Shown here in pieces: positions 4,398 through 57,464 of a stretch of DNA of 64,000 nt. The DNA comes from Glycera tridactyla (taxonomy: Eukaryota). Location: NCBI GenBank assembly GCA_965644265.1, contig OZ286461.1, forward strand, positions 76,694,001 to 76,758,000. Reading direction: 5' to 3'. The notes beneath the pieces were generated by a model. It saw only the letters and a list, made by a program, of their open reading frames with translations. It searched no databases and was not told where the DNA came from. Every line of letters starts with the position of its first letter. The first letter of the stretch is position 1. The position numbers and the translations under genes were made by a program.

Positions 4398-4564
4398 NNN
4401 NNNNNNNNNNNNNNNNNNNNNNNNNNNNNNNNNNNNNNNNNNNNNNNNNNNNNNNNNNNNNNNNNNNNNNNNNNNNNNNNNNNNNNNNNNNNNNNNNNNN
4501 NNNNNNNNNNNNNNNNNNNNNNNNNNNNNNNNNNNNNNNNNNNNNNNNNNNNNNNNNNNNNNNN
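4398..4564. other. Assembly gap (N run); further gaps at 52151-52458 and 56772-56914
   Basis: N characters in the sequence. Confidence 1.
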
Positions 4565-5199
4565 TGGCCACCACTAACAACCAAGATAATGTCTATCATG
4601 ACAGCAATGATGGACGTGACACCCCTTCTACTGACAGGAATGACTCTACTGTATAATCGGCCCAGTATGGAACGCCATTGGGGACTTTATTCACCATTTA
4701 GGGTTCTCCCTAATTCGATTTATGGAGAACCATATTTATTTAGGGAGATCCCTAAATCATTTACGGTATTCCCTAAATCGAATTATGGAGAACCCTAATT
4801 ATTCGAGTATTTAGTGATCTCCCTAATTCGAATTATGGTTCTCACTAAATCAGAATTATGGAGAACCATAAATCGATTTAGGGAAAACCATAATATGAGA
4901 AATGAGCTGGTCGAATTAGTGATTTCCCTTCTTGAATTATGGTGATCCCATATTGAATAATGGATTTTGGTATCAAACTGCAAGGATTGCCACGACATTA
5001 AGTGAGAACCATAAATCAATTATGGTATACCCTAAATCACGACTATATGCCAATATCCATATATCATTTAGGGAGTTCCATAAATGATTTATGGAACTCC
5101 ATAATTCAGTCATGTTGCAAGTCCACCAAATTTAGTGATCTCCATAAATTGATTTATGGTTTTCCATGATTCGAATTAGGGAACACCCTAAATCGAATT

Positions 5200-7030
5200 A
5201 GGGATCTCCCTAAATCGATTTATGGAGTTCCCTAAATTAGGCCAGCCCATGGTGCTGCCATCTTACTTCAAATGAGGGCATTTAGGGAGATCCCTAATTT
5301 GATTTAGTGATCTCCATAAATCGATTTATGGTATTCCCTAATTCAAATTAGGGATCACCCTAAATCGATTTATGGAGTTCCCTAAATCAGGCCATCCCAT
5401 GGTGCTGCCATCTTACTTCAAATGAGCGCATTTAGGGAGATCCATAATTCGATTTAGTGATCTCCATAAATCGTTTTATGGTATTCCATAATTCGAATTA
5501 GGGATCTCCCTAAATCGAATTAGGGATCTCCCTAAATCGATTTATGGAGTTCCCTAAATTAGGCCAGCCCATGGTGCTGCCATCTTACTTCAAATGAGGG
5601 CATTTAGGGAGATCCCTAATTTGATTTAGTGATCTCCATAAATCGCTTTATGGTATTCCCTAATTCAAATTAGGGATCACCCTAAATCGATTTATGGAGT
5701 TCCCTAAATCAGGCCATCCCATGGTGCTGCCATCTTACTTCAAATGAGCGCATTTAGGGAGATCCATAATTCGATTTAGTGATCTCCATAAATCGTTTTA
5801 TGGTATTCCATAATTCGATTTAGGGATCTCCCTAAATCGATCTATGGAGTTTCCTAAATCGGGTCATCCCATGGTGCTGCCATCTTACTTCAAATGAGCG
5901 CATTTAGGGAGATCCATAATTCGATTTAGTGATCTCCATAAATCTTTTTATGGTATTCCATAATTCGAATTAGGGATCTCCCTAAATCGATTTATGGAGT
6001 TCCCTAAATCAGGCCATCCTATGGTGCTGCCATCTTACTTCAAATGAGTGCATTTAGGGAGATCCATAATTCGATTTAGTGATCTCCATAAATCGATTTA
6101 TGGTATTCCATAATTCGAATTAGGGATCTCCCTAAATCGATTTATGGAGTTCCCTAAATCAGGCCAGCCCATGGTGCTGCCATCTTACTTCAAATGAGGG
6201 CATTTAGGGAGATCCCTAATTCGATTTAGTGATCTCCATAAATCGATTTATGGTATTCCCTAATTCAAATTAGGGATCACCCTAAATCGATTTATGGAGT
6301 TCCCTAAATCAGGCCATCCCATGGTGCTGCCATCTTACTTCAAATGAGCGCATTTAGGGAGATCCATAATTCGATTCAGTGATCTCCATAAATCGTTTTA
6401 TGGTATTCCATAATTCGAATTAGGGATCTCCCTAAATCGATCTATGGAGTTTCCTAAATCGGGTCATCCCATGGTGCTGCCATCTTACTTCAAATGAGCG
6501 CATTTAGGGAGATCCATAATTCGATTTAGTGATCTCCATAAATTTTTTTTATGGTATTCCATGTTTCAAATTAGGGATCTCCCTAAATCGATTTATGGAG
6601 TTCCCTAAATCAGGCCATCCCATGGTGCTGCCATCTTACTTCAAATGAGTGCATTCATGGAGATCCATAAATCGATTTAGTGATCTCCATAAATCGATTT
6701 ATGGTATTCCATAATTCGAATTAGGGATCTCCCTAAATCGATTTATGGAGTTCCCTAAATCGGGCCATCCCATGGTGCTGCCATCTTACTTCAAATGAGC
6801 GCATTTAGGGAGATCCATAATTCGATTTAGTGATCTCCATAAATCAATTTATGGTATTCCATAATTCGAATTAGGGATCTCCCTAAATCGATTTATGGAG
6901 TTCCCTAAATCAGGCCATCCCATGGTGCTGCTATCTTACTTCAAATGAGCGCATTTAGGGAGATCCATAATTCGATTTAGTGATCTCCATAAATCGATTC
7001 ATGGTATTCCATAATTCGAATTAGGGATCT
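5200..7030 (+). repeat. 150-bp tandem satellite (~12 units) inside the foldback element
   Basis: Marker GGTGCTGC(C/T)ATCTTACTTC recurs at 5251, 5401, 5573, 5723, 5873, 6023, 6173, 6323, 6473, 6624, 6774 and 6924. Units are built from ~21-22-bp quasi-palindromic subrepeats (TAGGGATCTCCCTAAATCGATT). Inverted units at ~7035-7130 and ~7975-8340. Confidence 0.95.
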
Positions 7031-7133
7031 CCCTAAATGCCTTCATTTGAAGTAGGATGGCAGCACCATGGGCTGGCCTGATTCAGGGAACTCCATGAAT
7101 TGATTCAGGGAGATCCCTAATTCGATTTAGGGT

Positions 7134-7134
<1 letters not shown>

Positions 7135-7183
<49 letters not shown>

Positions 7184-7452
7184 GTCATTCTCTCTTTCTC
7201 CTCCCCCTCTCTCTCTCCCCCGTCTCCGTCTCCGTCTCTGTCTCCCGCGTCTGCTCTCGCTCCTGCTCTCGCTCCCTCCCCCTTCCATTTCTCCCTCCCC
7301 TCTCTCTGACTCTCTTTCTCTCCCTCCCCATCTCCCGCTCCCATTCCCGTTCCCGCTTCATGACGTCACAATTGATCACATACTGATTGTGACGACCCAG
7401 AGCTTCCTTCATTATGACGTCATAACAGCAATCCCCGACTTCGTTTTCTCCC

Positions 7453-7519
<67 letters not shown>

Positions 7520-7790
7520 ACCTCACTCTCTTTCTCCTCCCCCTCTCTCTCTCCCCCGTCTCCGTCTACGTCTCCGTATCCCGCTCTTGCTCCAGCTCCT
7601 GCTCTGGCTCCCTCCCCTTCCCTCTCTCCCTCCTCCCCCTCTCTCTCACACTCTCTCTCCCTCTCCGTCTCCCGCTCCCGCTTCATGACGTCACAATTGG
7701 TTGTACCCTTGGTATCACACACTGATTGTGACGAGAATGAGCTTCCTTCATTATGACGTCATAAGAGCGACCCCCGACTTTGTTTTCCTA
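7135..7790. repeat. Duplicated (CT)n-rich cassette at the centre of the foldback element
   Basis: Two (CT)n runs (~7136, ~7455), each followed by a related pyrimidine-rich tract and CTTCATGACGTCACAATTG...CTTCCTTCATTATGACGTCATAA (at ~7356 and ~7681). Confidence 0.9.
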
Positions 7791-10472
7791 GATCAAGCCA
7801 GTGGTGCTGCCATCTTACATCAAATGAAGGCATTTAGGGAGATCCCTAATTCGATTAAGTGATCTCCATAAATCGATTTATGGTTTCCATAATTCGAATT
7901 AGGGATCACCCTAAATTGATTTAGGGATCTCCCTAAATCGATTTATGGAGATCACTAAATCGAATTAGGGATCTTCCTAAATGCCTTCATTTGAAGTAAG
8001 ATGGCAGCACCATGGGTTGGCCTGATTTAGGGAACTCCATAAATCGATTTAGGGAGATCCCTAAATAGAATTATGGAAAACCATAAATCAATTTATGGAG
8101 ATCACTAAATCGAATTAGGGATCTCCCTGAATGCCTTTGTTTGAAGTGAGATGGCACCACCATAGGCTGGCATGATTTAGGGAACACCATAAATCGAATT
8201 AAGGAGATCACTAAATCGATTTAAGGATCTCCCTAAATGTCTTCATTTGAAGTAAGATGGCAGCACTATGGACTGGCCTGATTTAGGGAACTCCATAAAT
8301 CGATTTAGGGAGATCCCTAAATCGATTTAGGGTGATCCCTAATTTGAATTATGGAGAACCATATTTCATTCAGGAAAAACCATAAATGATTTATGGTTCT
8401 CCCTATATCTTCGAATTAGGGATCTCCATTAATAATTTATGGAGAACCTTAAATAGATTTAGTGATCTCCATAATTATTTAGGGTTTACCCTAATTCATT
8501 TATGGAACACCCTAAATGATTTATGGATCTCCCTAAATAAATATGGTTCTCCATAAATCGAATTAGGGAGAACCCTAAATGTTGAATAAAGTCCCCAATG
8601 GCGTTCCATAGCCCAGGGCTGTACAATGGATACGGGAATTGACACATTGAGTGTCTGTGAATCCCCTGTTGGGGACCTTGGAAGAGGGATAACCCGTGTC
8701 AATCGCATAGGCCTCTCAGTATAGATCAGATGGTACTGAAAGAACGTAAAACAATCAAGCAACCAAGTGACTAACAGTCTTCACTGAGTTGTTATCTCCC
8801 ATCATGAATCGAAGCAATACTCACCGACAACAATCACCACTGGCTAAGATGTTGGAGTTGCCGTGAGATGAATCATGAGAAAAGGTACATATGAAACAGT
8901 CAGGGTGTTAGACCAGCCCAATGTGTTTATTGATGGATCTATGCTGTCACTTCGTTGCCACAAAGATCCATTCTTGGAAAGAAGATGGCGATTACCAAAC
9001 AGAGAAACTCCGATATTTTCGATGTAATAGAACCAATCGCATAATGATTATGTCATTGGTGATGATGATCGTATCATATTGATGGTGAGTATGTCATTGA
9101 AAATGATAGTAACTAAGATGATGGTGGTGGTGGTAATGATGGTGGTGTAGGTGATAGTGTGGTGCTGGTGATTCAAGGTCGATTCACGTCGCTTCAAATT
9201 CATATACAGTGAATTCTGTTGATGATATGGCGCCCATATGTCGCGTATTTGTGGCTGCCAGTGTCCTTGCTATCGATTCAGAAAGAACGGGTTGTCACAT
9301 GAGAACACTGGGAATAGATAAACAATTTAATTAGCAGAGAGCTGCATTTTGTGGTCATCTCTATAGCAGGACACTTTTATTGAAAGCACTGGCATCTTGT
9401 TCATATCCATTTCAAACCAGTTCTCGTGGTTCAAATGCTCGATGAAAAGGGATCCATGTTACTCTGGACATCTCCAACCGTGCCTGAATCAACATCTATG
9501 AAGGCTGCATCCTGTGAATCATCATCAATATTCGAATATCTAACAGAGCTAAACATAAATCATAAATCTGCCAGAGCTATAATATCACGAGCATGGCCAG
9601 TTTGTTGTGCAATGATGTCTTCCCCATATGGTCGTCGCATTCTAATGGCTTGTATACTTTCAATAGATCGAAATCAGATACGATTCTAGTAAAAAAATAA
9701 AATTCAGAGTTCTCAACCATTCTGTGTTCAGGATTTGTGAGAGCGATAAACCTGACATCCATATATCTGACATTCATAGATCAGGAACCCATGACCAACA
9801 CATCCTTTTGGTTGACACATGCTTTCAAGCTTCAATTGATCGATCAATCAATCTGTCGATTAATCATTCAATCAGACAGTCAGTCAGTGAGCCAGCTGAT
9901 TAGTCAGTTTGTCAGTCAGTCAGTTATCCAGTCAGTTGATCTGTTAGCCTTTCAGTCAATCAATTAGCCAGTCTGTCAGTCTGTCAGTCTGTCTGTCTGT
10001 CTGTCAGTCCAATCAATCAATAGATCAATCAAGCTCACCATTTGCACGACCATTTGAATGCCAAACAGGACGAGGCAAGGACATCTCTTTCACCTCATGC
10101 TGGTAAGGTTCGAAATGAAGTTGTTTACATGTGACCGGTCACCGGTCACCAGTCGCATCAGTCACTAGATGGCACTGTGTCAATTGGTGACATCTAGTGT
10201 TTCCATAGTGATGCATTCTCCTGTGATGTCACAATGAGAGATGAGAGCCCATTCTCTCATCCCAGTCGAAATATTTGATTTAGGCTCAGGTTATCCAGAG
10301 TTTCGGCTTTATTCAGTCACCAAATAGCAATTTACAATTTCTGAGAAATTCCCCCCGACTTGGTTCAAAGATTGACGATCCAAAAAGTTTTCCACTTCTT
10401 TGTGTGGCCAAATACAACTAGAATTCATTTCGGAATTGATTCATCTCGATGTTAGTTTATATTTGACATTAA

Positions 10473-12279
10473 CCCTTTACTGCATACACCCCAGCGACAT
10501 GACGTGCATCTATGCACTTGCACCAGCTTACCGTGACCTGTTTCTCAAGGCAGACGTTGAACTACACTGTGTGCATGAAAAAATCACTACATGACGTGAT
10601 TTTGACACCTCCAACATGGATTGTAGAGAGTCTATTGTCAAGCCCTGTATCCATGATAATCCATCAATGACCACCAAAATATTCGTATAAGGCAAACAGA
10701 ACACGCAGAAAACGATGGTAAGTATGGATTTTCGATTGGAATCGCCATTTTATCCCAGATGATCGAAAGAGCAGATATGACAGACGTGGTGATCCCGGCC
10801 GTACACACTGAATACATGTCAGATGCCATGTCAACAAACCAGACCTTCTCGAGGAAAAATATTTATCATGTCCGGAATACAAAGCCGATCTTCACACACG
10901 TGTGTGAAGACGTGTATGAAGACGGCATGCTGATATTTCAAATAGTTTCTTCACAAATACAAGTTGAGTACAGATTTATGCACCACTTTTGGGGGGATAA
11001 AAATTGCGCCACACTGACGGATGACTGCCAGATATTTTCCAAACCAAAACAGCAAAAAATACACAAAAATTTTGACCATCATTGAAAAAATCATTGGATA
11101 AACGTGATGCTTGTATTCTTTTTGTGTGTATTGGAAGAAAAAACTGTGGAAATACGACGAATATTTGCTGAATGGAGGTGGGATGAAGCGTGGCGTCTGT
11201 ATAACCACTCTCACTCACTTTGACAGGTCAATCGCGAGTTTTCATCAATGACTTTGCGTGGAATATCTGCAATCGCTTCAAGAATACGGGTCATAACTGA
11301 ACAAATCATGTACGTATATATTCACAAGGAGTTCCTCTACACGTCTATGCAAACGGAATGTCGATATTTTGAATAATTTCTTCATAAATGGAGTGAGAAT
11401 ATGGGGCCGGCTTTGACAACAAGAATGCTAACTGCGTCTCAATGTGCGGATTTCCCCGGGGAGGAGCACCACAACTTTATGGCAGAGTTAACCCAAGAAA
11501 TAACCGAAATCCATGAAACAGCATGTGATAAATGGATACCTCATGGCCTTTTTGTGTGTGTGGGGGGGGGGTGTAAGGTTAAAGTGTGAACATATGACGG
11601 ATATTCGCCAAATGAGAGCCGAATGAAGATTGAAGTCTGAATCAGCTGTGTGGAATAACCCCACCTCGTTCTGATTTGTCAATCCCGAATTTTCTATGAT
11701 AACTTTCATGTGGAATTTCTGCCATCTCGCCGAGAATCTTGGTATAAACTGCACAAATCATATACTGTTATGATCAAAAGAACTTTTGTGTAGACGGCAT
11801 GTCGATATTTCGAATATTTTCTTCACAAAGAGAGGTGCAAGTTGCCGGCCGGCGGTGACAACAAGAATGCTATACTGCGTCTCAAACACGTTGCTTCCGC
11901 GAATTCATACATGGCCTTACCAGCGAAAATACCATAGATATATTGAACTCACAGTGAAAACGATTGTACAATTAAATCTGCGGATATCCGTTTGTACATA
12001 CTCCATGTATAGATTCCGAAAATCCGTCGAATATTCGCCATAAACAGTGGAGATGTCAAGAGAGCAGCTACATCCCTATTTTTAGAATGTGTTTCGTTCA
12101 TATCGATATTCGCGGGGAAAGGCCTCCCAAAAATTATTTTCTGAAGTATGGCAATTCATTTTTTCCCGATATTTTCGTCAAGATGCGTCATACGGCGTTT
12201 CATGCACCAGGGGACACACGTGAATCGGCGTTTCATGCACACCAAGGTATGCGACAAACGGTGTCATATGCAGTAAGGG
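10473..12279. mobile_element. piggyBac-like non-autonomous DNA transposon (~1.8 kb)
   Basis: Left end TTAA|CCCTTTACTGCATA (TTAA 10469-10472) and right end TATGCAGTAAGGG|TTAA (TTAA 12280-12283): CCC...GGG termini with TTAA duplication. Subterminal GTGCATGAAA / TTTCATGCAC motifs at both ends. No long ORF. Confidence 0.65.
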
Positions 12280-12575
12280 TTAAGTATGTTTGTATACTTT
12301 TTTACCCCAGGCTTAGAAAATTGAATTATTCTAAAGTTCAGTGTCTGTTTCAAAATAACCTTCAGCTGTGGAGTTTCTGTGTATTTGAAATGAAAAGCCC
12401 CTTCCCCCAGTGTTGGCTGAATAGTGTCACTCTGTAAACATTCACCCAGGGGCCGGTGTATGTACCAGTCCACTGGGTCGAGGGATCCTTCGTGTTGGTG
12501 GTCACATACGTGTAAATGTCCTCAGTTAGAGTCAATCAAGTGACCTATTGGAGTATTTATTATCAATCTTCAGTG

Positions 12576-13942
12576 ATCTCATTTCTGTCCTGGTAGAATC
12601 TCCACTTCATACTATTCTTATAGAGTGATATTCTATCCTTGGTATTTAGTTCATTAGGCAGCATGTTTCTATGGATCTAATTGAATATGATCTCTAGTCC
12701 AAAGGTGATGTCATGGCTGCTGGTTGGATGAACATAGATGGAATGAAGGACTTGTGAGAGCTCCCTAAGAAGTAGCGAAAGAATATCATGCTATGTTCGA
12801 AGTAGTATAGTATGATATTTCTCTATTCGAGTTCGTCAAAAACAGTGTACATCAACACGTATGTACAATTACCCCAAGACCAAGGGGGCTTTTTCGGATT
12901 GACAAATACAGTAGTGATACTCAGCTAGCTCACTCTATGAGTATGAATATGATTATGATCATGATTATGAGATGAAAAGAGCAAGGTATGAATGAATGAG
13001 AGATGAGGATGCACCATGACACATGTGTTCCACTAAATCTAAGAAGGATAACTTCAACATATGAGTGGATAATATTGGCATGTCTTCATTGACATATCAC
13101 ATACAGTTTCTGGTGCTGGAAATGAACAATGGTTGGGAACCGATAATAAATGACGCACATAAATGACGAATTGGATATGATCCACATCGAGTATATCAAG
13201 TAGTCAATACTTCTCTTGCAAATCCTTTCAATACGTCGAAGTATTGAGTGGACAATGCGAAACATAAGTCTGGTGCGATGTAAGGGATGATCAAAATATA
13301 TGCCGAGACGGAGTCGAGGATTGATCAAACAAGAGAAAGAGAAGGAACATGCTCACTGAGCAGTCAACTGACAGTCAATCATCATACCGACGCTAAGATG
13401 TTATCAGCATGACTAGGAAAGATAGCGGGACTATTGGAGAACTACCCGAACGCCCGAACGACCCTTCAATGCTAGCGATTTCCATAAAATTACTCCTCAC
13501 GTTATGGCCTCAGAAAGAAATATCTCAAATTGCTGATCAGTCGAGGACCGCCGCACAATCCCTGATTCAGATCATGGCGCAACTACGATGAAGCACCAAC
13601 AGTGGGTGATTGATATGGACAGTGCATGAAAACAGCTTCATAGTCACTAATGAGAAACAAATGGATGGTAGGTTACGCACCATCTGGATCATCCAAGATC
13701 AATTCTGTGTATGCTTGTATTTGGATGGAGTGACAGGAGAGGGCATGTCTGGTAAGTGATGCGGTACTCACAGGAGATAAACCTGGGGTGTGTACACTGA
13801 TCTACATAAATGAAACTATAATGTAATATACACAGAAACAAGGTTCTCAGGATAATATGAGCGGATGTTCTACAGGAGTCTGGTCAACTTTTTGTGTTGG
13901 TACCAGGGCTCCATCCTTTCTATAGGCCTTGTTTGGTGACTC
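12576..13942 (+). repeat. 1367-bp direct repeat, copy 1 (abuts the LINE 5' end)
   Basis: Identical to 21985-23351 (offset 9409) except 4 transitions, by manual comparison: 12828/22237, 12904/22313, 13305/22714, 13516/22925. Confidence 0.97.
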
Positions 13943-14056
13943 TTTTTTTCCATACAAGGACATGCCGAGAGAGTAAGACGTACGTTTCGAGGGAGAGCAA
14001 AGTCGTTATTTCCTAGACATTGATGCCAGTGCGATAGTTAACCACGACACGAAAAT

Positions 14057-16675
14057 ATGAGTAAGAAGTCAAAGACTACGCTGAAGAAGGATGAATCTCC
14101 AGGTATTTTGGATTCAAGTAATATTAGACATTATTTCACACCGCTGGGAGCGGAACACAGTGTGAGCGATAAAGCAGCTAACGAAGCCCTTTCACCTGCT
14201 GTATTTTCATTACCTGGGGGTGATCTACCCCCGGCCGGGTTCGAACCTAGCACTTCACGGTCGACTGGACCGCAGTCTAGAGTAGAATCAGGTGTGCTCG
14301 CAGTCTCCTTGTCCGGGGATTTAGCGTCTCCGTCCATGCGTTCAGTCTCATCTCCTACCTCACCAGGCCCATTTGTCACCGCAGACTTGGCACAGGGTAC
14401 CGACACCACTCTCCCCACATCGAGTGGGGAGGAACATACACCACTTTACATTAGTACTGGTGTTGAAAATGATGATGAAACTGCGTTCTCCACATCGAGT
14501 GGAGATACCCCTTCATCAAGCAGAATCACCATTACCTCCACCATACTAGACACAATTGGCACCCCGAAGCTCGAGTCAAATAGCATTGATATTGCTGGTG
14601 AAACCTCCTCATCGTCTATAATCATTTGCTCCACCATGTCCTCCACATCGAGTGGAGAACCACCATGTTCAAATTTAACGGCCTGTGATGACCCAGACCA
14701 GAACCAACACACTCCTATCGACATGCAAGCTAACGATGCTGAATGTAGTTCGCGCACAATGAGTGGTAATCAACTGACGGATGTATCACTGAACTTCCTC
14801 CAAAAGTCTAGCATTGACGACCAGCGGGAGAATATACCAAATGAAAGTATGGTGATAATCAAAACACCTAAAAAGAAACAGGCTCCCCCCACAGCAGTAA
14901 AGAACAAAATTTTCGATTTCTTCAAAAACATTAATTTCATTCCCTCGGCGGATGATGATAGATTGGAACCTAACGATATTATCAATTCTGTCTCGAAAGT
15001 GAAACCTGTAAAGTATCGCTTTCCAGTAGATAATCTTTCAGTATCACCAGGAGTGAAGCGTAGGAACAAGAGCTCTTCACCTGATGCTAATGATGTCAAA
15101 GAAGATATAAAACGCCTGAAAGATGCAGGTGCCTCACCACCGATGGAAAATGAAACCATATTTTCAGCGAGTGCAACAGAGATGGACTATGAACCATCTA
15201 ATCCGAATCTACTTACCAGTCCCCCCAATCCAGCACTTATAAATCGTTCACTGACTTCACTTCTGGGGTCGGAAGTTAATCTTGACACTAATCCAGGTGA
15301 GAGTCCTTCGAATATGGATACCTTGAAGGACCTTAAGCAACTACTTCGGGATGAATTATGGACTGATCTGCGCAAAGAGCTTATGTCTGACCTGAAGTCT
15401 GAAATTTCAAATATGCACAAAGACCTAACCAGTCAGTTAAGTCGAGCACTTGACAAAAAAAGTAAAGGGCTTGAGAATGAACTGAAGGACTATATCAAAG
15501 GTGAGATCACGTCAGAAAGGATGTCGGTGTTGAAAGTAAGTGAAAAAGAAGTTATGTCAGCCACCATGTCTGAAGTGTCCAAAGAATTGGTTTCGGTTGA
15601 ATTGAAGGTCAAGAACCTTCAAAGGGATGTGAAATCTCTTTTTGCGAAGGTCAATAATGATGTGATAGTGCAGCATGTTAATGAAAATATACCTGACATA
15701 GTCATCCCACCTAAAACGGACAACTTGATCCGCTCAAATGATCTTGAAAAAGTTCATGCTCGATTAGAACAACTTGAGCTATCGGATCGCCTTAGTTGTA
15801 TTATTATAGAAGGTGTTGATATTGATCCGCAATATTCTCTGACAGAGAATATAACATTTTGCCTGAATACCAATCTTGATGTGTGTTTGTATGACTCAGA
15901 TATAGTGAAATGTACCTACCTAGGCAAATCAAAACGTGATCCCAGGCAAATCCTTGTAAGATTCAAAGACGTTGAAAACAAAAGGAAAATTCTGAAGCAA
16001 AAAAGTAAATTAAAGGGTGGTCGTATCTTTATCAAGGAGTTTCTCACTGCTAAGAATAATAATCTATTTTATCGAGCAAGAGAGTCCAAAAGGAGTAAGA
16101 ACTATAACAGGGTTTGGTCCTATGATGGCCTCATCTGGGGGGCCAAAAACTTTGACAGTCAACCAGAATTGATAAATGATGACAATCCTCCTACAGTGCC
16201 CACTGACATGAATAAAAAGAGACCAACTACCACTGAAAATCCACCGGTCTTCTCGGTCAATCCCAGGAATAATGGCACAAATCGAGCTCATAATTATAAT
16301 AATCCGCACCAAGTTTACCAGATGAATCAACCCCAGCCCCCACCCCCTCCTATACCGTTTCCACCTGTATGGCATCAACCACCACCAGGTTTTCCCTCGA
16401 AAACTCTACCAAGGTTCAATCATTTCCATGTTCCGCCGCCAGACTATCACCCGCTCGCATTTGTTGAGTCAGACAATTACAGGGAGAATTTTCCTGATAT
16501 AAATGGCCGACTACGCCCATCTGCCCCAGCCTTTAATCCTATTTGCCCGCCAGGGGCAGCCCAACCACCACATGAATCGAACTTCCCTCTTGCGCAACAC
16601 AATGGTAATACATTCCACCGTCCAGTGATACAACCGCTACGTGCAAATCAGCAACAACAACGCTTGTGGCGATAG
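14057..16675 (+). CDS. LINE ORF1 protein (872 aa): S/T-rich N-terminus, coiled coil, L1-type RRM + CTD, P/Q/N-rich tail
   Basis: Heptad-like region from ~aa 420 (TLKDLKQLLRDELWTDLRKELMSDLK...), then LEQLELSDRLSCIIIEGV...PRQILVRFKD..KRKIL..K.KLKG..IFIKEFLT..NNNLF..AR..K....VWSYDGLIW, which follows the L1-like RRM/CTD pattern of LINE ORF1 proteins. Confidence 0.85.
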   Translation: MSKKSKTTLKKDESPGILDSSNIRHYFTPLGAEHSVSDKAANEALSPAVFSLPGGDLPPAGFEPSTSRSTGPQSRVESGVLAVSLSGDLASPSMRSVSSPTSPGPFVTADLAQGTDTTLPTSSGEEHTPLYISTGVENDDETAFSTSSGDTPSSSRITITSTILDTIGTPKLESNSIDIAGETSSSSIIICSTMSSTSSGEPPCSNLTACDDPDQNQHTPIDMQANDAECSSRTMSGNQLTDVSLNFLQKSSIDDQRENIPNESMVIIKTPKKKQAPPTAVKNKIFDFFKNINFIPSADDDRLEPNDIINSVSKVKPVKYRFPVDNLSVSPGVKRRNKSSSPDANDVKEDIKRLKDAGASPPMENETIFSASATEMDYEPSNPNLLTSPPNPALINRSLTSLLGSEVNLDTNPGESPSNMDTLKDLKQLLRDELWTDLRKELMSDLKSEISNMHKDLTSQLSRALDKKSKGLENELKDYIKGEITSERMSVLKVSEKEVMSATMSEVSKELVSVELKVKNLQRDVKSLFAKVNNDVIVQHVNENIPDIVIPPKTDNLIRSNDLEKVHARLEQLELSDRLSCIIIEGVDIDPQYSLTENITFCLNTNLDVCLYDSDIVKCTYLGKSKRDPRQILVRFKDVENKRKILKQKSKLKGGRIFIKEFLTAKNNNLFYRARESKRSKNYNRVWSYDGLIWGAKNFDSQPELINDDNPPTVPTDMNKKRPTTTENPPVFSVNPRNNGTNRAHNYNNPHQVYQMNQPQPPPPPIPFPPVWHQPPPGFPSKTLPRFNHFHVPPPDYHPLAFVESDNYRENFPDINGRLRPSAPAFNPICPPGAAQPPHESNFPLAQHNGNTFHRPVIQPLRANQQQQRLWR

Positions 16676-17256
16676 TTGATTCATCTCATAGTCTTTAATC
16701 ATGGCTTATGTTCCTATCTACCGAAGACATTATGACCGTGTTCAACCCCCGAAACTTGTAAGCATTATATTTTTCTTCTTCTAGATATACTGTCTATAAC
16801 ATTTTTTTACTTTGCAACCACCGCCCGCGGCAGAAGTGACATAGCCATATAGTTGCACTCTATATTTAGTCATGACTCGGTCACTGACCCTGTGTGTGAA
16901 CCAGGTGTCGAAGAGCTCAGGTGTGTGAACTACACGCTGGTTATGTCTAGCGACGTAAATCAGAACTAGAAGTTCATCTACTTGCCGCTGTACAGAAACT
17001 GGGAGTGTGAGCCAAATCTCATTGCTGAATTACCTCGTGCTGATTTGTCTTAACCTAGCGGCCCATGAGTGCACCACAGTCGTGGGCTTTTTCCGCCAGT
17101 GCAATGCTAAATTACGACGATATTACCTGCGGTGGTGCTGAGAACTAATGTTGTCTATTCATACCGCCAGGTAAAACTGAGCATTCTCAACCAACTTGGT
17201 GATTTCAAAAGTGATCCGTATATATCCTATCTAGTTCTGCTCTCTTTGTATTGTAG

Positions 17257-18096
17257 AAATGTACCCCTCAGGACACGAACCAGGCCAAACAGAGGTTGAA
17301 CTACGTAGGCCCAGACAAATTGTTCAACGCTAAAAACATCTATCGTAGACATGGCCCACCGAAAATTCTATTACTTGGGGACTCTCATGTCATCCATGCG
17401 TCCTGTGCCATAGAGGACGTCCCTGAAGAGAATGAAATATCTCGCTTCATGACAGATACCATGTACCATGGGGTCAGTTGCTCCAAAATCTGGCGCCTTA
17501 TGGATAATCTCAAAGGAACTGGCATGAGTGACGAAAAATGTGCCAAGTATGGGAACCAATGGCAACGAGTGATTGATGGATCCTGGCGTCCAGAGTACAT
17601 CATTTTACTAATCGGGTGTAATGATGCGGACGACCTCAACTCTCGTCAAAACGTCCTATATCCAAATTTGGACAGTAAGTGTGCAGCTAAAATGGCCAAT
17701 GAGGAAGTTGACATATGGATCAACGAGTTATACCCTTGTATGTATGACTTAGTTAGTGAGATTCATGATGCATTCCCAGATGTGCCAATAGGGCACATCC
17801 CAGCATTCCCAAGAAGCTGGTGGGAAAATCCAACCAGAAGGCTCCTAAATTGTATAAATTTCAGATTTTATGGCCATCTGAAAAAGGAGTTCAAGGTTCG
17901 TCAGCTTACTACTCGCAGCCTGTATTACGACACTGGAAAACTTCCTGTTGGGTCAGGATATGCAGATGACATTATCCCAGGCTTTATGGACATAGATAAT
18001 GTACACCTCAACACCATGGGCTACGAGGTGATGTTGCGGGATGTCATCCCGAAGGTGATGGCTGCGTGTGAAACCAAGCCTAAATCAAAGAAATAG
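17257..18096 (+). CDS. SGNH/GDSL-family esterase ORF (279 codons open from 17257; no AUG before the catalytic Ser)
   Basis: Block I LLLGDSH (Ser 17383-17385), block II Gly (YHGVS), block III IGCND (17611-17625), block V DNVH (17995-18006). First in-frame ATG is at 17449, downstream of GDS. The frame opens immediately after ...ctctttgtattgtag (17256). Confidence 0.88.
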   Translation, partial: KCTPQDTNQAKQRLNYVGPDKLFNAKNIYRRHGPPKILLLGDSHVIHASCAIEDVPEENEISRFMTDTMYHGVSCSKIWRLMDNLKGTGMSDEKCAKYGNQWQRVIDGSWRPEYIILLIGCNDADDLNSRQNVLYPNLDSKCAAKMANEEVDIWINELYPCMYDLVSEIHDAFPDVPIGHIPAFPRSWWENPTRRLLNCINFRFYGHLKKEFKVRQLTTRSLYYDTGKLPVGSGYADDIIPGFMDIDNVHLNTMGYEVMLRDVIPKVMAACETKPKSKK

Positions 18097-18581
18097 TTAT
18101 CTCATGTTGTCACCTGAGGGCCACTGGGATCCCATTCCCTCCCATTAGTACCCCCTCCCGACAACTCCATTACCCCTCTCTAGATACTCTCTGTATCTCG
18201 ACAAGTAATTATGAAAACTAACTGGTATACCTTAAATAAAAGATTAAATCAGATGTTTTGTTGTCTACCTATATACTTATTAGACATTTACATCCTGGGA
18301 TCACCCTGTTGATGGTATTATATGTGGCGAAATGAAGTGTGTGTTTTTGCTGTGTGCTGAGAGACAAGTAGATTCATCCTCGAGGATATGGTAACCACGA
18401 TGGTCGGTGATCTGTGAATGCCCACTGACCATCCATCTGCCAATATCCAAGGTCAGAACTGCTTTTATATCTATATTTCCAACTGATAATAAAATCTGCC
18501 ATGGTTGTTTATGAACATATATGCAATGCTCTCCCGAAATTCCATTAATTGTCTGCCAACATCTGAAATCTATAATCAAGA

Positions 18582-21548
18582 ATGCCAAGACCACGTAAGT
18601 ACAAATATATCTTTCCACTGAGCCATGAGACCAGTGTCAGCAGTTACTGTTCGATGGCGCTATCTAATCTGCCTGGCATTGCTACGGGTGCTCTAAACAT
18701 CCGTAGCATTATCAGGAAGCACGATGACGTCTCTTCCATCTTAAAAATAAGTGACTTGGATATAATGTGTTTGACAGAATCGTTCCTGAATGATAGTATT
18801 ACCGATGCGGAAATGTACATACCATCCTATAAGTTTTTCCGTCAGGATCGTACTATTAACTGTCATAAAAATGGGGGTGGTGGGATTATTGTGTATGTCA
18901 AGAGTCATCTGAATACCAAATTGAATGTTGAATTATGTCATTGCTCTCCTGATTTGGAAGTCCTGAGTTTCAGTTTGTTTTTGGAACAGACTAGGCCAAC
19001 GCACTATCTAACCATATACCGACCGCCAGATGGCAATCTCAAAAAGGCTTTAGACGTTCTTGAAGATATCCTTTCTCGACCTGTCTTTGTGTCATTGAAT
19101 GATACAATATTCGTGGGTGATGTGAACATTGACCTTCTAAATCCACGTAATCATAAGACTATCATGTATAACAAATTCTGTGAAGCTGTAGGGTTTTACC
19201 ATCTGATCACAGAGGCAACTCGCATCTCGTTAAATAGTAAAAGCTGCATTGATCATATTTTGGTCAATCGTCCTGAATATTACGCAAGTTATGGAATCTT
19301 AGACCCAGGGTTGAGTGACCATTGTCTTATCTATACCTCTAGACATAGATTCAAGAGCAAGAAACCAAAAGAAATGATAGAAATTCGTTCTCGTCGGAAG
19401 TTTGATCATAATACATTCAACAACAGTCTAATAAATCACAATTGGAGTAGGATCTACGATGCACCGAATACTGATGAGGCGTCAGAATCCTTCTCAAATG
19501 ATTTCGTAGAAATTCTAAATAAACACGCCCCCCTGAAACGTGTTCCATGCAGATCTGACCATCAACCCTGGGTCAACCATGAGTACCTGAGTATGATTGA
19601 TTACGTTGAATATAGATCGAAAATCTATAATAAAACGCCCACAAATCTTAATCTGGAAATGAAAAAAGAGGCCCTACGTAGCAAAAATCGCCTGAAAAAA
19701 TCACTAAAAAGATCTTTTATTTGTGACAGTCTGAACGACACAAAAGGAGACAGTAGAAAATTGTGGAAGCAATCAAAGCGCATCTGGCCGCTCACATCAA
19801 AGGAATCTGTGGTCCCAACATTAGGTGCTGATCAGTTTTCTGTGAACAATACGGATTATGTAAACCATGTAAATGAATATTTTTCAAATGTTGGTGCCAC
19901 CCTTGCTGAACGTTTTGAGAACCAAAATGACCCTATAATTGATGGAAATGATACAGATGTTAATATAATTGATAATGTGGATAGTTTTTGCCTAAAAGAA
20001 GTCGATGTTGGGAATGTCGAAAGTGCCATCTCTAGATTGAGCAATACCTCTGCCTATGGATCGGACGGAATCAGCAGTTTTTATGTGAAACAAGCTATCT
20101 CGTCTATCAGTTCGCTACTAGTCTATATATTCAATAAATCAATCAATGAAGCAACTTTTCCAAAAATCTGGAAGCATGCAACTATCAGTGTTCTACACAA
20201 AGGGGGGCTAACAAATGATCTCGGAAATTTTAGGCCAATATCATTGCTTTGTATCCTGGGGAAAGTTTTAGAACGCTTGATACATGATCAAACTACTGCT
20301 TTTCTGGAGAAATTTGGTGTCCTAAGTACTGCTCAATTCGGGTTCAGGAAGGGATACTCCACAGGCTCTTGTCTGGCCTCATTACTTGATGACATCTACT
20401 GCTCAGCAGACGCAGGCCTAGTGAGTGGAGTTCTCTTCCTGGACCTGAAAAAAGCGTTTGATACAGTAAACCACTCCATCCTACTAGCTCGTCTTGTTAG
20501 GAACAATTTCGGAGGCACCACCGTTAGATGGTTCAGTTCTTACCTGAGAGGAAGATCACAATCAACTCGAATCGGTCTGACTACATCGAGTCCTTTACCA
20601 ATCGAACACGGTGTCCCCCAAGGGTCCATCCTTGGACCATTACTGTTCATTGTCTATGTAAATGATATATTCAACTATGTGAACCACTGTCGGCCGCTAC
20701 TATATGCAGATGACACGGCACTGCTTGTGTCAGGGCCGAATAGTATGATTGTTGAAGAAAAATTAAATAATGATTTGGTCGGAATATCGAAGTGGTTTAA
20801 AGACCTGAAATTGACAGTCAACATCGTAAAATCAAAGACTATGTTATTCGGGACTAACAAGCGCTTGCTATTGAATGATGGTTTGAATGTCAAACTAGAT
20901 GATATCAGAATTGATCAGGTATCTAAATACAAGTATCTCGGAGTTCAGTTAGATCCATCCCTCAGCTTTGAGGCACATGTCAAATATATTGTTAATAAGG
21001 TACACTTTAGACGATGGGCATTAACTTATTCGAGACCGTCGATCACTAAAGACACGGCCCTTTATTTATTTAACAGTCTTATACAGCCTCTATATTATTA
21101 TGCTGACTACATCTATGGCGCTTGCTCAAAGAGAACGAGTAAACGACTCCAAATATCTCAGAATCGCTGTTTAAGTGTGATAAATGAGTCAGGCTGGAAC
21201 TATTCGGCCTCTGAACTACATGAGATACTGAAAGTGGACAACCTGGAGGTGACAAGGAAACAACACCTATTGTCTGAGGTATATAAGGCAGTGAAGGGTA
21301 CACAACACGGCCCGTTATCATATCTTTTCAGAAAGAAGGACAACCATGGAAAGCACCATGATACTAGACATAGTCGATCCCAGAACAATAATCTTACTGT
21401 CCCGAAGAATAAACTCCAATTTGCAGATAATAGCCTTCGATATCGGGGCCCAGTACTCTGGAATAAACTTGACCATGAGACGAAGAATTGTGAAAGCCTA
21501 TCATCATTTAAGGCAAAATTAAAATCCTGCCCATCGTTAGCTGGATAA
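18582..21548 (+). CDS. LINE ORF2 (988 aa): AP endonuclease + reverse transcriptase
   Basis: APE motifs LNIRS, CLTES, YRPP, GDVNIDL, IDHILV, SDHCLI. RT motifs FRPISLL, QFGFRKG, FLDLKKAFDTVNH, GVPQGSILGPLLF, YADDT, YKYLG. C-terminal S..YRG..LWN.L as in CR1/L2/Crack-type elements. Confidence 0.97.
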   Translation: MPRPRKYKYIFPLSHETSVSSYCSMALSNLPGIATGALNIRSIIRKHDDVSSILKISDLDIMCLTESFLNDSITDAEMYIPSYKFFRQDRTINCHKNGGGGIIVYVKSHLNTKLNVELCHCSPDLEVLSFSLFLEQTRPTHYLTIYRPPDGNLKKALDVLEDILSRPVFVSLNDTIFVGDVNIDLLNPRNHKTIMYNKFCEAVGFYHLITEATRISLNSKSCIDHILVNRPEYYASYGILDPGLSDHCLIYTSRHRFKSKKPKEMIEIRSRRKFDHNTFNNSLINHNWSRIYDAPNTDEASESFSNDFVEILNKHAPLKRVPCRSDHQPWVNHEYLSMIDYVEYRSKIYNKTPTNLNLEMKKEALRSKNRLKKSLKRSFICDSLNDTKGDSRKLWKQSKRIWPLTSKESVVPTLGADQFSVNNTDYVNHVNEYFSNVGATLAERFENQNDPIIDGNDTDVNIIDNVDSFCLKEVDVGNVESAISRLSNTSAYGSDGISSFYVKQAISSISSLLVYIFNKSINEATFPKIWKHATISVLHKGGLTNDLGNFRPISLLCILGKVLERLIHDQTTAFLEKFGVLSTAQFGFRKGYSTGSCLASLLDDIYCSADAGLVSGVLFLDLKKAFDTVNHSILLARLVRNNFGGTTVRWFSSYLRGRSQSTRIGLTTSSPLPIEHGVPQGSILGPLLFIVYVNDIFNYVNHCRPLLYADDTALLVSGPNSMIVEEKLNNDLVGISKWFKDLKLTVNIVKSKTMLFGTNKRLLLNDGLNVKLDDIRIDQVSKYKYLGVQLDPSLSFEAHVKYIVNKVHFRRWALTYSRPSITKDTALYLFNSLIQPLYYYADYIYGACSKRTSKRLQISQNRCLSVINESGWNYSASELHEILKVDNLEVTRKQHLLSEVYKAVKGTQHGPLSYLFRKKDNHGKHHDTRHSRSQNNNLTVPKNKLQFADNSLRYRGPVLWNKLDHETKNCESLSSFKAKLKSCPSLAG

Positions 21549-21891
21549 GTACACCGAGTACTTAAGCCCGGCTCTTGAATATGCTAATATAGGATAGTTA
21601 TGTTATGGTATTACTGTCATTGTCTAGTAAGCTGATGTGAACACTTTTGCCAGTACCTTTATGATATTTGATACTGTATAAGAAGAAATTGAATGTACGC
21701 GGTGAGGAATACGTAACTAAAAATAATGGGTATGTATAATTGGAATGAGGGTGTATAAAAGGTGTGCTGAGAGGTGGAAACTGATTGCAATTTTAGTTGT
21801 TGTTACTTTGAGAATGAAATGTGACCCAGTGTACAGTATGACGGAGATCTTCCGATTGCATCTATAACCAGTTTGCATAAGTTTGTGATAC

Positions 21892-21905
21892 GACCCTTCG
21901 GGGTC
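21892..21905 (+). promoter_or_regulatory. 3'-UTR stem-loop GACCC-TTCG-GGGTC of the LINE (candidate RT recognition element)
   Basis: 5-bp stem closed by C-G with a UUCG loop, ~55 nt upstream of the tail. L2-clade LINEs are known to use 3' stem-loops. Function here is inferred. Confidence 0.5.
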
Positions 21906-21984
21906 CTGAGTTATCTGTTATGTTATGTTATATATAATATGTTTACTTATGCAATAAACAATTCTTATTCTTATTCTTATTCTT

Positions 21985-23351
21985 ATCTCATTTCTGTCCT
22001 GGTAGAATCTCCACTTCATACTATTCTTATAGAGTGATATTCTATCCTTGGTATTTAGTTCATTAGGCAGCATGTTTCTATGGATCTAATTGAATATGAT
22101 CTCTAGTCCAAAGGTGATGTCATGGCTGCTGGTTGGATGAACATAGATGGAATGAAGGACTTGTGAGAGCTCCCTAAGAAGTAGCGAAAGAATATCATGC
22201 TATGTTCGAAGTAGTATAGTATGATATTTCTCTATTTGAGTTCGTCAAAAACAGTGTACATCAACACGTATGTACAATTACCCCAAGACCAAGGGGGCTT
22301 TTTCGGATTGACGAATACAGTAGTGATACTCAGCTAGCTCACTCTATGAGTATGAATATGATTATGATCATGATTATGAGATGAAAAGAGCAAGGTATGA
22401 ATGAATGAGAGATGAGGATGCACCATGACACATGTGTTCCACTAAATCTAAGAAGGATAACTTCAACATATGAGTGGATAATATTGGCATGTCTTCATTG
22501 ACATATCACATACAGTTTCTGGTGCTGGAAATGAACAATGGTTGGGAACCGATAATAAATGACGCACATAAATGACGAATTGGATATGATCCACATCGAG
22601 TATATCAAGTAGTCAATACTTCTCTTGCAAATCCTTTCAATACGTCGAAGTATTGAGTGGACAATGCGAAACATAAGTCTGGTGCGATGTAAGGGATGAT
22701 CAAAATATATGCCAAGACGGAGTCGAGGATTGATCAAACAAGAGAAAGAGAAGGAACATGCTCACTGAGCAGTCAACTGACAGTCAATCATCATACCGAC
22801 GCTAAGATGTTATCAGCATGACTAGGAAAGATAGCGGGACTATTGGAGAACTACCCGAACGCCCGAACGACCCTTCAATGCTAGCGATTTCCATAAAATT
22901 ACTCCTCACGTTATGGCCTCAGAAGGAAATATCTCAAATTGCTGATCAGTCGAGGACCGCCGCACAATCCCTGATTCAGATCATGGCGCAACTACGATGA
23001 AGCACCAACAGTGGGTGATTGATATGGACAGTGCATGAAAACAGCTTCATAGTCACTAATGAGAAACAAATGGATGGTAGGTTACGCACCATCTGGATCA
23101 TCCAAGATCAATTCTGTGTATGCTTGTATTTGGATGGAGTGACAGGAGAGGGCATGTCTGGTAAGTGATGCGGTACTCACAGGAGATAAACCTGGGGTGT
23201 GTACACTGATCTACATAAATGAAACTATAATGTAATATACACAGAAACAAGGTTCTCAGGATAATATGAGCGGATGTTCTACAGGAGTCTGGTCAACTTT
23301 TTGTGTTGGTACCAGGGCTCCATCCTTTCTATAGGCCTTGTTTGGTGACTC
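21985..23351 (+). repeat. 1367-bp direct repeat, copy 2 (starts right after the LINE tail)
   Basis: Matches 12576-13942; see copy 1. Confidence 0.97.
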
Positions 23352-23410
23352 AGCGGTAGCGTACTTGGCCGGTGTGCAATGGGTCTGGGTTTCAATCCCC
23401 AGTCCTACCA
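23339..23410 (+). pseudogene. Degenerate tRNA-derived sequence (tRNA pseudogene or SINE head)
   Basis: A-box-like TGACTCAGCGGTAG (23346) and B-box-like GGTTTCAATCC (23388) at tRNA-like spacing, CTGGG/CCCAG T-stem, ends in CCA. Acceptor stem does not pair. Confidence 0.5.
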
Positions 23411-24089
23411 TGCAGGTATGTTTCACCCTTCATCTTCGATCCTCCTTGACAGGTGGTCTGATTTAGCCTACTGAAGTGCAGAAAGTGGACCTCAAACCTC
23501 ACCATTTCCATTTCCAACCTTTCTATAGATGCATCAGCGTGAGCAGGATTCATTCTTTCACAACATATCATCCTCGTCATTCAAGAAATGGGATGTGATA
23601 TAAACTCGAGATGTGACTGTTGAAATGCTTGTTGGAGTGGGCACCCTATGTCAGTTAGAATTTTGTTGATCGTCATGTGTGATGATTACTACTGAACAGG
23701 TTGCCTCACGTATGACGGGCGCCATGCGACAGAAACTCAACAGGCTAGATACAAGACAACTGGTGAGAGAATTATTTTCAGATGTCACGAGCTGTCATCC
23801 TCAGGAGCTAATTTACTTTCACATACTGGAAAACACATTGAGAAAGTAACATTATATTTTCCAAGCCAAATCTACTACTGGCTCAATGTCCATACATATA
23901 GATTGTGATCTGACTTGTCCGTCACTCAATATTTACGGATTACGCATATAATTTTCTGCTGTGATGACGTGTCGATCATACAGGTCTAAAACCCATTGCA
24001 TGATGACCTTCTGTATGTGGCGTTGATATTTTCCATTTTGATAATGGCTTCGCATTAGGTTAGAAATCTTGACACACGTTTAAAAGGTT

Positions 24090-25900
24090 GAGAGGCGGTG
24101 TTGAATATATAAATGCCTTCCATGAACCAGTGACTCATACGTGTCAGCACATTCCCCCACGCTTGCTTGGCACGTCACACAAGCATTCGCTGAGACTCAG
24201 CTCCATATACTCGTTTTCACATCTGATAAGACAGAAGAATATAATCAGCTCTTTCCGATGGCCGAGTCAAACACTGCATTGAATGCATCCAATGTTACCT
24301 CTCCAGGGCAGGGTGGCGTTCATTATCAAACGCTGAAACACCTCCCAGTCTGCTCTTTGCAGCTGATGCTCAATATCATTAACCAGATATGGGAGCCTGG
24401 GCTCTTATTTTGGCACCATTTCGGAGCAGGTGGATCAATTTAAGTTCATTTAAGTACAACGCTATGAATTTCACCCATAAACAGTCAATGAGTAGTTGTA
24501 TGAATGGAAGCACTGTACTAATACTCTACAAATCCCTGATTATGCCCATACTGGATTACGGAGACATTGCCTATGGATGCACAGGTGTCGATAATCAGCT
24601 GCGACTCCAAAGAATCCAGAACGCAGTTTGTCAGGTTGTCTTGAGTGCTGAACCAATGACGTCAGTTGCTGACATGCACCGGACCTCTAAACTAAATTTA
24701 TTGTTTGCATGCAGGGATGACCATGTGTCCACTTCTGTTTATCAATGTATCAGGGATCTCAACCCGCCTCCTCTTAACAGCTTTTTTGAAACCAGAGTCG
24801 ATGATGAGTGACCAATGTCAAGGAGTCAATCGACAGGTGTCTTAATGATGCCATGCTCAATCCTTATCATAGGGGCCAAGAACATTGGTGTTGGGGGGGG
24901 GGGGCAGAATATAAAATGACATTCCATCCACAGCCTGCCAGTCTTCAAAAAACGTCTGCAGGATATAAGGCAGTCATTTTTTGTTTTTGGCAACAATTTG
25001 TGTGTGTTGTATATGCCTGATTGGTAATTATAATGTCATATCTGTCAATGTGTCACTCCTGGCGTTCGGTGAATGTGGTCCAACCCACTTCCTTGACCAA
25101 TTTGCATCGATTGACAAATCGTGCCGAAAGATCTTGGTATATAATTTATGGCTTTGCATGCCTTACAAACCTCAGAATGTTTGATGCAGGTCCTATTCAA
25201 GCTTCAGGTATCTGTCTCCGGGCCTTTCAGACATCACCTACTGGAAGCCTCAATGTGGAAGCCAATGAACCCTCACTTCATTTACGAAGAATAAAGTTAG
25301 GTCTCCAGTATTGTCTGACATTGAAGGTTACCCCCATCGAACCTAACACATGAGTGTCTTCCCGCCAGAATATACAAAAATATTTCAAGAACTTCCCAAC
25401 GTCATAGCTCCCCTTGAAATAAGGTTCGAGAATTATTTCGGAAGTTACGACTTAAATACACTCCCAATATCACAGATGGACCCTGCCCAGATTGCAGACT
25501 AGGACAAAATTCACTTGAATTTGGCCCAGTCCACAGAAGAGACCACAAAAGTCAGCTGATTGGTCAGTGCTTTCAGGCAAACTGAGGGTCTTACTGGTGG
25601 CTTCTAAATACATATCAAGGTCATAAAAGCAAGAGTATTCATTTTACCCAGATTCTCTGTCATCTCTGAAGGTCTTGCTGGGAAATCTCAAGAACAGTAT
25701 ACCTTTGCAAATTTTGGAAGAGTATCAAAGATCATCAGGAGACTGTCAGACTTTGCTGGATTCCAAGCCATATTGGTATTTCCGAAAATGAGGTAGCTGA
25801 TAAAGCAGCCAAATCTGCTCTAGGTTTGCCAATCACCGAAATGGAAATCCACTATTCAGACTTCAAACCAAGAATTAAGCTCTTTATTGACTAACTGTGA
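24090..25900 (+). mobile_element. Decayed I/Nimb-type LINE with RNase H
   Basis: Fragments TEEYNQLF...SPGQGGVHYQTLKHLP..LQLMLNIINQIWE (~24230-24395), GICLRAFQTSPTGSLNVEANEPSLHLRRIKLGLQY (~25205-25315) and RNase H CWIPSHIGISENEVADKAAKSAL (~25754-25822). Many stops and frameshifts. Confidence 0.8.
24440..24830 (+). mobile_element. CR1/L2-type RT C-terminal fragment nested in the Nimb remnant
   Basis: LYKSLIMPILDYGDIAYG...RLQRIQNAVCQVVL...MHRTSKLNLL parallels the C-terminus of the intact ORF2 (LFNSLIQPLYYYADYIYG...RLQISQN). Confidence 0.65.
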
Positions 25901-56771: not shown

Positions 56772-57464
56772 NNNNNNNNNNNNNNNNNNNNNNNNNNNNN
56801 NNNNNNNNNNNNNNNNNNNNNNNNNNNNNNNNNNNNNNNNNNNNNNNNNNNNNNNNNNNNNNNNNNNNNNNNNNNNNNNNNNNNNNNNNNNNNNNNNNNN
56901 NNNNNNNNNNNNNNGCGGCTACGGTGAAGAAGACAGTGTTCAAGACGAATAGTCTGCCTGGGTGATACTTTCGTGATGTGATGGTGAATATAGACTGCTC
57001 TAATGGCAGTGTTGATCCTCGGGGACGCCAGTGTGACTGATGATACTACGGGATAGAGTGATGTAAATGATGGCGACTCATCTTACAGGGGGTTATGATG
57101 TAGCGCTGCCTGAGCTGAACCCCACACGTAACATAACCACTATATTACTTCCAGCAAAAATATCAGTAGCCCATTAGCTCTTAATCTTCGGGATCCAAGG
57201 CCATTGAATGCACTCCTTGAATCTCAAATGGTTTAACAACTATGGTTGGTTGCATGAATCAATACGATTTTCAAATTACGATGATCAATGGAGTGAGTAG
57301 TCATCAACCTCAGTACATTTCGAACCCGCACTTATGGTGTATTCCAGAATATCATACAAATTCCTATGAAGTACAGATTGTTGTCTCTGCAACATTATAC
57401 AAGATCAACCCATCCTGTCTGATAGGTGATATTAGTATATATTATGTACTGTTCATAGCCATCA

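Follow-up and report, generated by a model that had tools for sequence, protein, structure and literature searches.

Analysis of a 64,000-nt stretch of the Glycera tridactyla genome (GenBank assembly GCA_965644265.1, contig OZ286461.1, positions 76,694,001 to 76,758,000 of the forward strand) revealed a long interspersed nuclear element (LINE) on the plus strand in which a separate SGNH esterase gene stands between open reading frames (ORFs) 1 and 2. The whole stretch is referred to as the window, and coordinates are counted from its first letter; the LINE insertion occupies positions 13943-21984 (8042 bp). Comparison with homologs makes it very likely that the element has a three-gene layout with an intron in its esterase gene, and the separate esterase gene is a trait of a LINE lineage. 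As an overall explanation we propose, at a probability of roughly 0.7, a young and essentially intact three-gene LINE of the CR1 group whose spliced esterase would be translated by reinitiation.

Three uninterrupted plus-strand frames of 872 aa, 279 codons and 988 aa, separated by gaps of 581 and 485 nt, had been described in an earlier sequence-only reading and were recovered on recomputation. The first, ORF1 (14057-16675), has a low-complexity N-terminal half, a coiled coil, an RNA recognition motif (RRM), a C-terminal domain (CTD) and a Pro-rich tail. Its sequence-level matches are weak (Transposase_22 in Pfam, E 0.12; L1ORF1p, E 0.4). An AlphaFold2 (AF2) model of the C-terminal 296 residues consists of a long helix, RRM and CTD, and all 10 best Foldseek matches of this model were L1ORF1p (2yko, E 3.5e-5). 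By this model the protein is a type II, L1-like ORF1p in which a coiled coil is followed by an L1-type RRM (about 15794-16012) and a CTD (about 16022-16171). ORF2 (18582-21548) is clearly matched by Pfam Exo_endo_phos (E 1.3e-10) and RVT_1 (E 2.8e-35) and showed no Pfam match to RNase H or a zinc knuckle (CCHC), leaving an apurinic endonuclease-like domain (APE) and a reverse transcriptase (RT) only. With its APE-RT ORF2, a simple-repeat tail and no long terminal repeats (LTRs), the element is an APE-type non-LTR retrotransposon. It is CR1-group-like in that RNase H and a C-terminal CCHC motif are absent and the tail is a microsatellite, and within this group it probably belongs to the L2/Crack/Daphne lineage. 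A Crack/Daphne-like placement, suggested by a C-terminal motif, is a lead only. The trees contain unnamed hits only.

The middle frame (17257-18096, plus strand) runs uninterrupted for 279 codons from stop to stop. Stop codons separate it from ORF1, and the two lie in different frames. Pfam alone gave a weak match (Lipase_GDSL_2, E 0.0016). The AF2 model of this frame has a pLDDT (predicted local distance difference test) of 92.9, its Foldseek matches are GDSL/PAF-AH hydrolases, and a flavodoxin-like SGNH fold was confirmed at the level of the model. The catalytic residues are conserved throughout the family: the block I Ser (S43, 17383-17385) is invariant in 25/25 members, the block III Asn (N122, 17620-17622) is found in 24/25, and in the block V DxxH motif (D247 and H250, 17995-18006) the Asp occurs in 18/19 and the His in 19/19. 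The sequence-only reading had correctly paired an RRM-type ORF1p with a separately encoded SGNH protein. It had also considered all four SGNH blocks intact, which applies to the Ser-Asp-His triad and the block III Asn; at block II (17479-17481) the window copy has Cys where the other 24 of the 25 family members have Gly. Its suggestion of an env-like membrane protein found no support, as no transmembrane or signal segment was detected in the esterase (maximum 19-residue hydropathy 1.08) and the predicted product is a soluble PAF-AH-like hydrolase with a basic N-terminal peptide.

Within the 279-codon frame no in-frame ATG precedes the catalytic Ser, the first one (17449) being located downstream of it. 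Homologs, uninterrupted members included, extend about 20 residues further upstream, to a Met start and a basic motif of the PIYRR type. Two other candidate starts, an out-of-frame ATG at 17259 (24 codons) and a TTG at 17296, were ruled out because homologs reach upstream into this motif. A matching first exon was identified 25 nt past the ORF1 stop (16701-16757, plus strand; 57 nt), comprising an ATG and 18 codons with the basic PIYRR motif. Compared with 12 homolog N-termini, it came out on top of 4480 regional peptides (z 9.3). Exon 1 and the 279-codon frame were aligned to the homologs separately, and in homolog coordinates the end of the one abuts the start of the other, with a gap of 0 in P0123, P0124 and P0134 and to within 1-2 residues in three further homologs. 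The sequence between them (16758-17256, plus strand) has the features of a phase-0 spliceosomal intron of 499 nt with GT and AG ends, a GTAAGC donor, a polypyrimidine tract and a TAG acceptor that ranks 8/462 among AGs, and it contains stops in all three frames. The 581-nt gap after ORF1 is the sum of the 25 nt, exon 1 and this putative intron. We infer that the gene consists of two exons and a U2-type intron, with the 279-codon frame as exon 2, and that this frame is not the free-standing uninterrupted esterase ORF for which it had been taken.

The position of the acceptor is common to four related elements (labelled L005, L166, L169 and L172) and shifted by 1 nt in a fifth (L167). In all six elements, that of the window included, the AG precedes a conserved Ala by 9 codons and the catalytic Ser by 42-44 codons, and the esterases of the five others are 19-25% identical to that of the window. 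The acceptors at this shared position rank within the best 1-5% of the AGs of their contigs. For L005, L169 and L167 a first exon and a donor can also be recognised, and their introns measure 521, 118 and 175 nt, respectively; the intron of L166 exceeds 580 nt. Homology of exon 1, clear for the window, is moderate for L005 and L167 (z about 3.3). No sequence was found to be shared among the introns or spacers of relatives, and together with the varied intron lengths this is consistent with an intron of old date rather than an insertion. Unusual folding of the window intron was not detected (z -1.0).

These comparisons also bear on the idea that the esterase is a decaying, unexpressed passenger, broken in the window copy by a 499-nt insertion. 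A long frame without an ATG, the replaced block II Gly and the long terminal branch of the window gene in the esterase tree (1.6) could be taken as signs of decay. Such an insertion would, however, have to place its GT and AG on an exact codon boundary at a position that five other elements share, the 499 nt showed neither terminal repeats nor a duplication, and 279 codons have stayed open with the triad intact in an element whose three genes are all unbroken. We consider decay very improbable.

An exhaustive HMMER search with the middle frame returned 77 homologs; word-index searches with the esterase and with the ORF1 RRM-CTD gave no matches, and no relatives were found in the viral sequence collection. 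The full order of ORF1, separate esterase and ORF2 is present in L001 and L003, and partial layouts were observed as ORF1 end plus esterase (L005, L169) or esterase plus ORF2 (L008, L167/L168). The ORF2s of these relatives are about 30-40% identical to that of the window, and no close relatives of the window LINE were found. One ORF2 clade unites the window with the esterase-bearing relatives, with support of 99/96 in the APE tree and 99/93 in the RT tree, and every clade member with enough upstream DNA carries the esterase gene; L171, L006 and L007 have too little upstream DNA for their esterase status to be judged. ORF2 scans returned mostly elements outside the clade, and of all the elements returned only L008, a clade member, had the esterase family; the retrieved LINEs outside the clade were without it. 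This recurrence across a well-supported clade rules out a one-off insertion of the esterase block, which the sequence-only reading had named as one outcome that would overturn it, and the separate esterase gene is a lineage trait.

Some further architectures were encountered among the matches. The esterase gene of L003 (3423-5774) has a 480-residue low-complexity C-terminal extension (P0122/P0200), and ORF1 of L003 is frameshifted. L009 (417-6224) consists of one 1936-codon frame in which an N-terminal SGNH esterase is continuous with APE-RT. Outside the clade, a LINE ORF1 in L038 (337-1947) encodes an AlkB-like 2-oxoglutarate-Fe(II) oxygenase domain and, after it, an SGNH domain. Many bacterial metagenome-assembled genomes (L086-L165; Sedimenticola, Ca. 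Thiodiazotropha and others) contained animal LINE contigs, most likely as host contamination.

The esterase tree, from which the exon 1 region was omitted, has intron-bearing genes in each of its four main branches, interspersed with uninterrupted ones. The window esterase falls into a clade with 98/98 support, in which the gene is uninterrupted in every other member whose N-terminus is known. One ancestral intron with several losses is a simpler explanation than repeated gain at one position, and such losses would be predicted if spliced RNA was at times reverse transcribed. L003 and L004, both with an uninterrupted esterase gene, are genomic contigs. The esterase gene was probably captured together with its intron from a host by the ancestor of the clade.

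As to expression, we lean slightly towards reinitiation, by which ribosomes that are done with ORF1 would start again at the exon 1 ATG. In four elements the distance from the ORF1 stop to this ATG is -19 to +25 nt (for L005 under the assumption that an internal TAG is a mutation), and its place beside the stop in intron-bearing elements fits termination-reinitiation, a known route for ORF2 of L1 and SART1. Read without splicing, the frame from 16701 encodes a 27-residue peptide. Unspliced RNA would yield this peptide only and spliced RNA the esterase, and splicing would thereby set the accessory protein on or off or adjust its dosage. The unspliced RNA would be the usual template for retrotransposition, and spliced RNA that is copied now and then would give rise to relatives without the intron.

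A rather unlikely alternative, with the three genes and the intron unchanged, would be a dedicated subgenomic RNA of the kind that expresses env in retroviruses, in which a cis- or trans-spliced 5′ leader is joined just before the esterase ATG and ORF1 is removed. The acceptors that precede the esterase ATG by 0-16 nt have ranks of 1/632 in L003, 1/181 in L004, 4/229 in L008, 5/78 in L173 and 39/453 in L001, and in L003, L004 and L008 the ATG is more than 100 nt away from the ORF1 stop. The 5′ untranslated region (UTR) of the window LINE moreover has a GTAAGA donor-like site near 13974. On the other side, the AG before exon 1 is weak in the window (rank 89/462), no matching donor for a subgenomic RNA was identified, and the ATG adjoins the ORF1 stop in the intron-bearing elements. 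Lacking ORF1, such an RNA could not lead to further transposition, and this would favour persistence of the intron. The high-ranking acceptors before uninterrupted esterase ATGs suggest that splicing may still express the gene in these relatives.

Alternative splicing from a donor within ORF1 to exon 2 would instead create a coiled coil-esterase fusion resembling the ORF1p of ZfL2-1, and no separate esterase would be made. The coiled-coil region contains a phase-0 donor at 15536 that matches the frame of the acceptor at 17256, and the top ORF1 donors of L001 and L003 are in phase with their acceptors. A phase match is expected by chance in one of three cases, though, the two strongest window donors (15297 and 15501) are out of phase, and the N-terminus with Met and PIYRR is conserved across the family including its uninterrupted members, all of which renders a fusion improbable.

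Several points weigh against the proposed spliced and reinitiated esterase. The presumed removal of the intron is deduced from sequence comparison, and the splice scores derive from approximate generic matrices that were not trained on the host. The window donor is moderate (rank 25/448), and an acceptor at 16784, 27 nt inside the intron, outscores that at 17256 and is the strongest acceptor-like site of the element. Exon 1 of L169 showed no significant homology (z 0.9). The strong acceptors 0-16 nt before the ATG of several uninterrupted relatives favour a subgenomic mRNA over reinitiation. In the window copy the oxyanion-hole Gly of the family is replaced. Most relatives come from a single metagenome sample (ENA CHAS20-1, apparently the same as GCA_013332675.1), L001 being from a second assembly, held by NCBI. 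Finally, ORF2 would have to be translated past 13 upstream ATGs in the spacer between esterase and ORF2 (18097-18581, plus strand; 485 nt). This spacer has no Rfam match and no unusual RNA folding (z -1.8), and a conserved acceptor upstream of ORF2 was not found. A strong donor-like site is located at 18595, 13 nt into ORF2; given this site and the acceptor at 16784, alternative splicing is possible.

The RNA-chaperone and target-primed reverse transcription roles of the two core proteins follow from established knowledge of their folds: ORF1p would act as an L1-like RNA chaperone and ORF2p would carry out target-primed reverse transcription. The esterase might aid the assembly or traffic of the ribonucleoprotein on lipids or membranes, or strip acyl groups; by analogy with ZfL2-1 this is its most likely role, held with less confidence than reinitiation. 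Our most far-reaching proposal, which we put at clearly below even odds, is that the clade has kept a retrovirus-like splicing switch over deep time, with the unspliced RNA serving as genome and the spliced RNA encoding a lipid-acting accessory enzyme, and that lineages losing the intron kept or regained an acceptor before the ATG. If true, a dedicated third gene would be expressed from subgenomic RNA in a regulated way in this LINE.

The limits of the element given in the sequence-only reading agree with two landmarks, an (ATTCTT)4 tail and a 1367-bp direct repeat that this reading did not mention. The left repeat copy (12576-13942) and the right one (21985-23351), both given without strand, are 99.7% identical with 4 transitions and 0 indels. 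The LINE begins with T7 directly after the left copy, followed by a 5′ UTR of 114 nt (13943-14056), where 5′ truncation is possible. In the 3′ UTR (21549-21984) an AATAAA is found at 21953-21958, and the tail (21961-21984) meets the right repeat copy with a 2-nt AT overlap. The end of the right copy is straddled by a tRNA-like A-box/B-box head (23346-23399, plus strand). This pattern matched once in the window and never in 30 shuffles and is suggestive only, having been tuned on the same site. The A box is interrupted in the left copy, whereas the right copy runs on into the head, so that the pre-insertion site was probably one repeat copy plus the right flank. The best reading of the repeat is a target-site duplication (TSD) of exceptional length, which might have arisen from a distant second-strand nick at insertion, and a TSD of 1228 bp is on record for ZfL2-2 (PMC2666801). 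The near identity of the copies makes a recent insertion likely.

Other origins of the repeat, as an LTR-like part of the element or as an assembly artefact between haplotypes, appear quite doubtful. Its length does far exceed that of usual TSDs (20 bp or less), and the four differences would be compatible with haplotype differences. Neither origin sits well with a LINE tail that joins the repeat by 2-nt microhomology, with a right copy that continues into the A-box/B-box head cut in the left copy, or with the absence of an N gap near the repeats; furthermore, a simple (ATCTTG)n tail closes L001, whose contig stops there before any flank. Microsatellite tails were noted in the window, L001 and L171. 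The tRNA-like head (23338-23412) is probably the 5′ end of a short interspersed element, and the 5′ junction of the LINE falls within the A box in the duplicated copy. No tRNA was reported by ARAGORN at 23338-23412, and an Rfam search of 11500-25000 gave no match.

No second copy of the LINE was found within the window. A C-terminal ORF2 fragment of another LINE (24512-24796, plus strand) is 29% identical to the window ORF2 (E 1e-8). An exon of a nicotinic acetylcholine receptor alpha-like gene, with best PDB matches to alpha-7, is located at 2786-3475 on the minus strand. Two inverted arrays of a 22-bp/150-bp satellite surround a CT-rich core at 4695-8581; their arms of about 350 nt are 85-89% complementary, and the structure is possibly a foldback-like element. 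At 43291-45702 a 93-bp tandem repeat with strong GC skew is present in 26 copies; as the unit length is divisible by 3, the array can be read as an open repetitive frame. Stretches of N occur at 4398-4564, 52151-52458 and 56772-56914, none of them inside the LINE.

LINEs are regarded as intronless elements with one or two ORFs, since their own RNA is the template from which they are copied and since splicing reportedly harms L1, and an intron in such an element is expected to be lost quickly. A clade that keeps a sense intron at a fixed position while sister lineages lose it would provide a natural test of RT-mediated intron loss and of how a LINE picks the RNA it copies. With chaperone and esterase encoded by separate genes, the esterase could be removed alone, making the function of a retrotransposon esterase directly testable. 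For annotation it is of note that ORF finders overlook or shorten an intron-split esterase gene.

A literature search on three-ORF esterase LINEs and intron-containing LINEs retrieved no such layout, Repbase and Dfam being outside this search and earlier cataloguing possible. The layout that the sequence-only reading regarded as possibly new was absent from the papers searched, and a LINE lineage with a separate, intron-split esterase gene is apparently undescribed. Esterase and Transposase_22 are considered alternative ORF1 types in LINEs with one or two ORFs (PMC4120745, PMC13343379), and no esterase-containing ORF1p in Repbase had an RRM (PMC3905857); the joint occurrence of RRM and esterase contradicts this published separation of ORF1 modules. 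The nearest counterparts are LINEs with an esterase-type ORF1 (ZfL2-1, CR1, RTEX; type IV of Metcalfe and Casane; PMC3905857, PMC4120745), which share with the window LINE a Ser-Asp-His SGNH domain upstream of APE-RT, a basic peptide near the esterase and a microsatellite 3′ tail. In type IV ORF1p, however, the esterase domain follows the coiled coil and replaces the RRM, whereas the window LINE has a separate intron-split gene besides a complete L1-type ORF1; with the esterase in another frame, stops in between and an RRM present, it falls outside the ZfL2-1 class. The ZfL2-1 esterase hydrolyses p-nitrophenyl acetate and binds liposomes (PMC3905857). Its structure was not among the sequence matches or the top-50 fold matches of the window esterase, which suggests a separate capture.

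Elements with a type II ORF1 (L2, Daphne, Crack and Kiri; PMC4120745, PMC13343379) resemble the window LINE in their coiled coil-RRM-CTD architecture, the weak Transposase_22 match and an APE-RT without RNase H, but have two ORFs, and a third gene or an intron is undescribed for them. Stand-alone accessory GDSL/SGNH genes are known from bdelloid Vesta LTR elements, as ORF3, and from Terminon/Athena Penelope-like elements. Such ORF3s are typically expressed from spliced messages, and Penelope-like elements may hold introns (PMC5408684, PMC6431247). These are other classes of retroelements, while the window element is an APE-type LINE with the gene between ORF1 and ORF2. Splicing of LINE transcripts has been reported for L1 RNAs (SpIREs, PMC5860796) and for the introns of TART (PMC1636488). 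L1 splicing is incidental and leads to dead-end copies, and the TART introns are antisense; the window intron, in contrast, would be a sense-strand coding intron that is conserved in position and needed for the protein.

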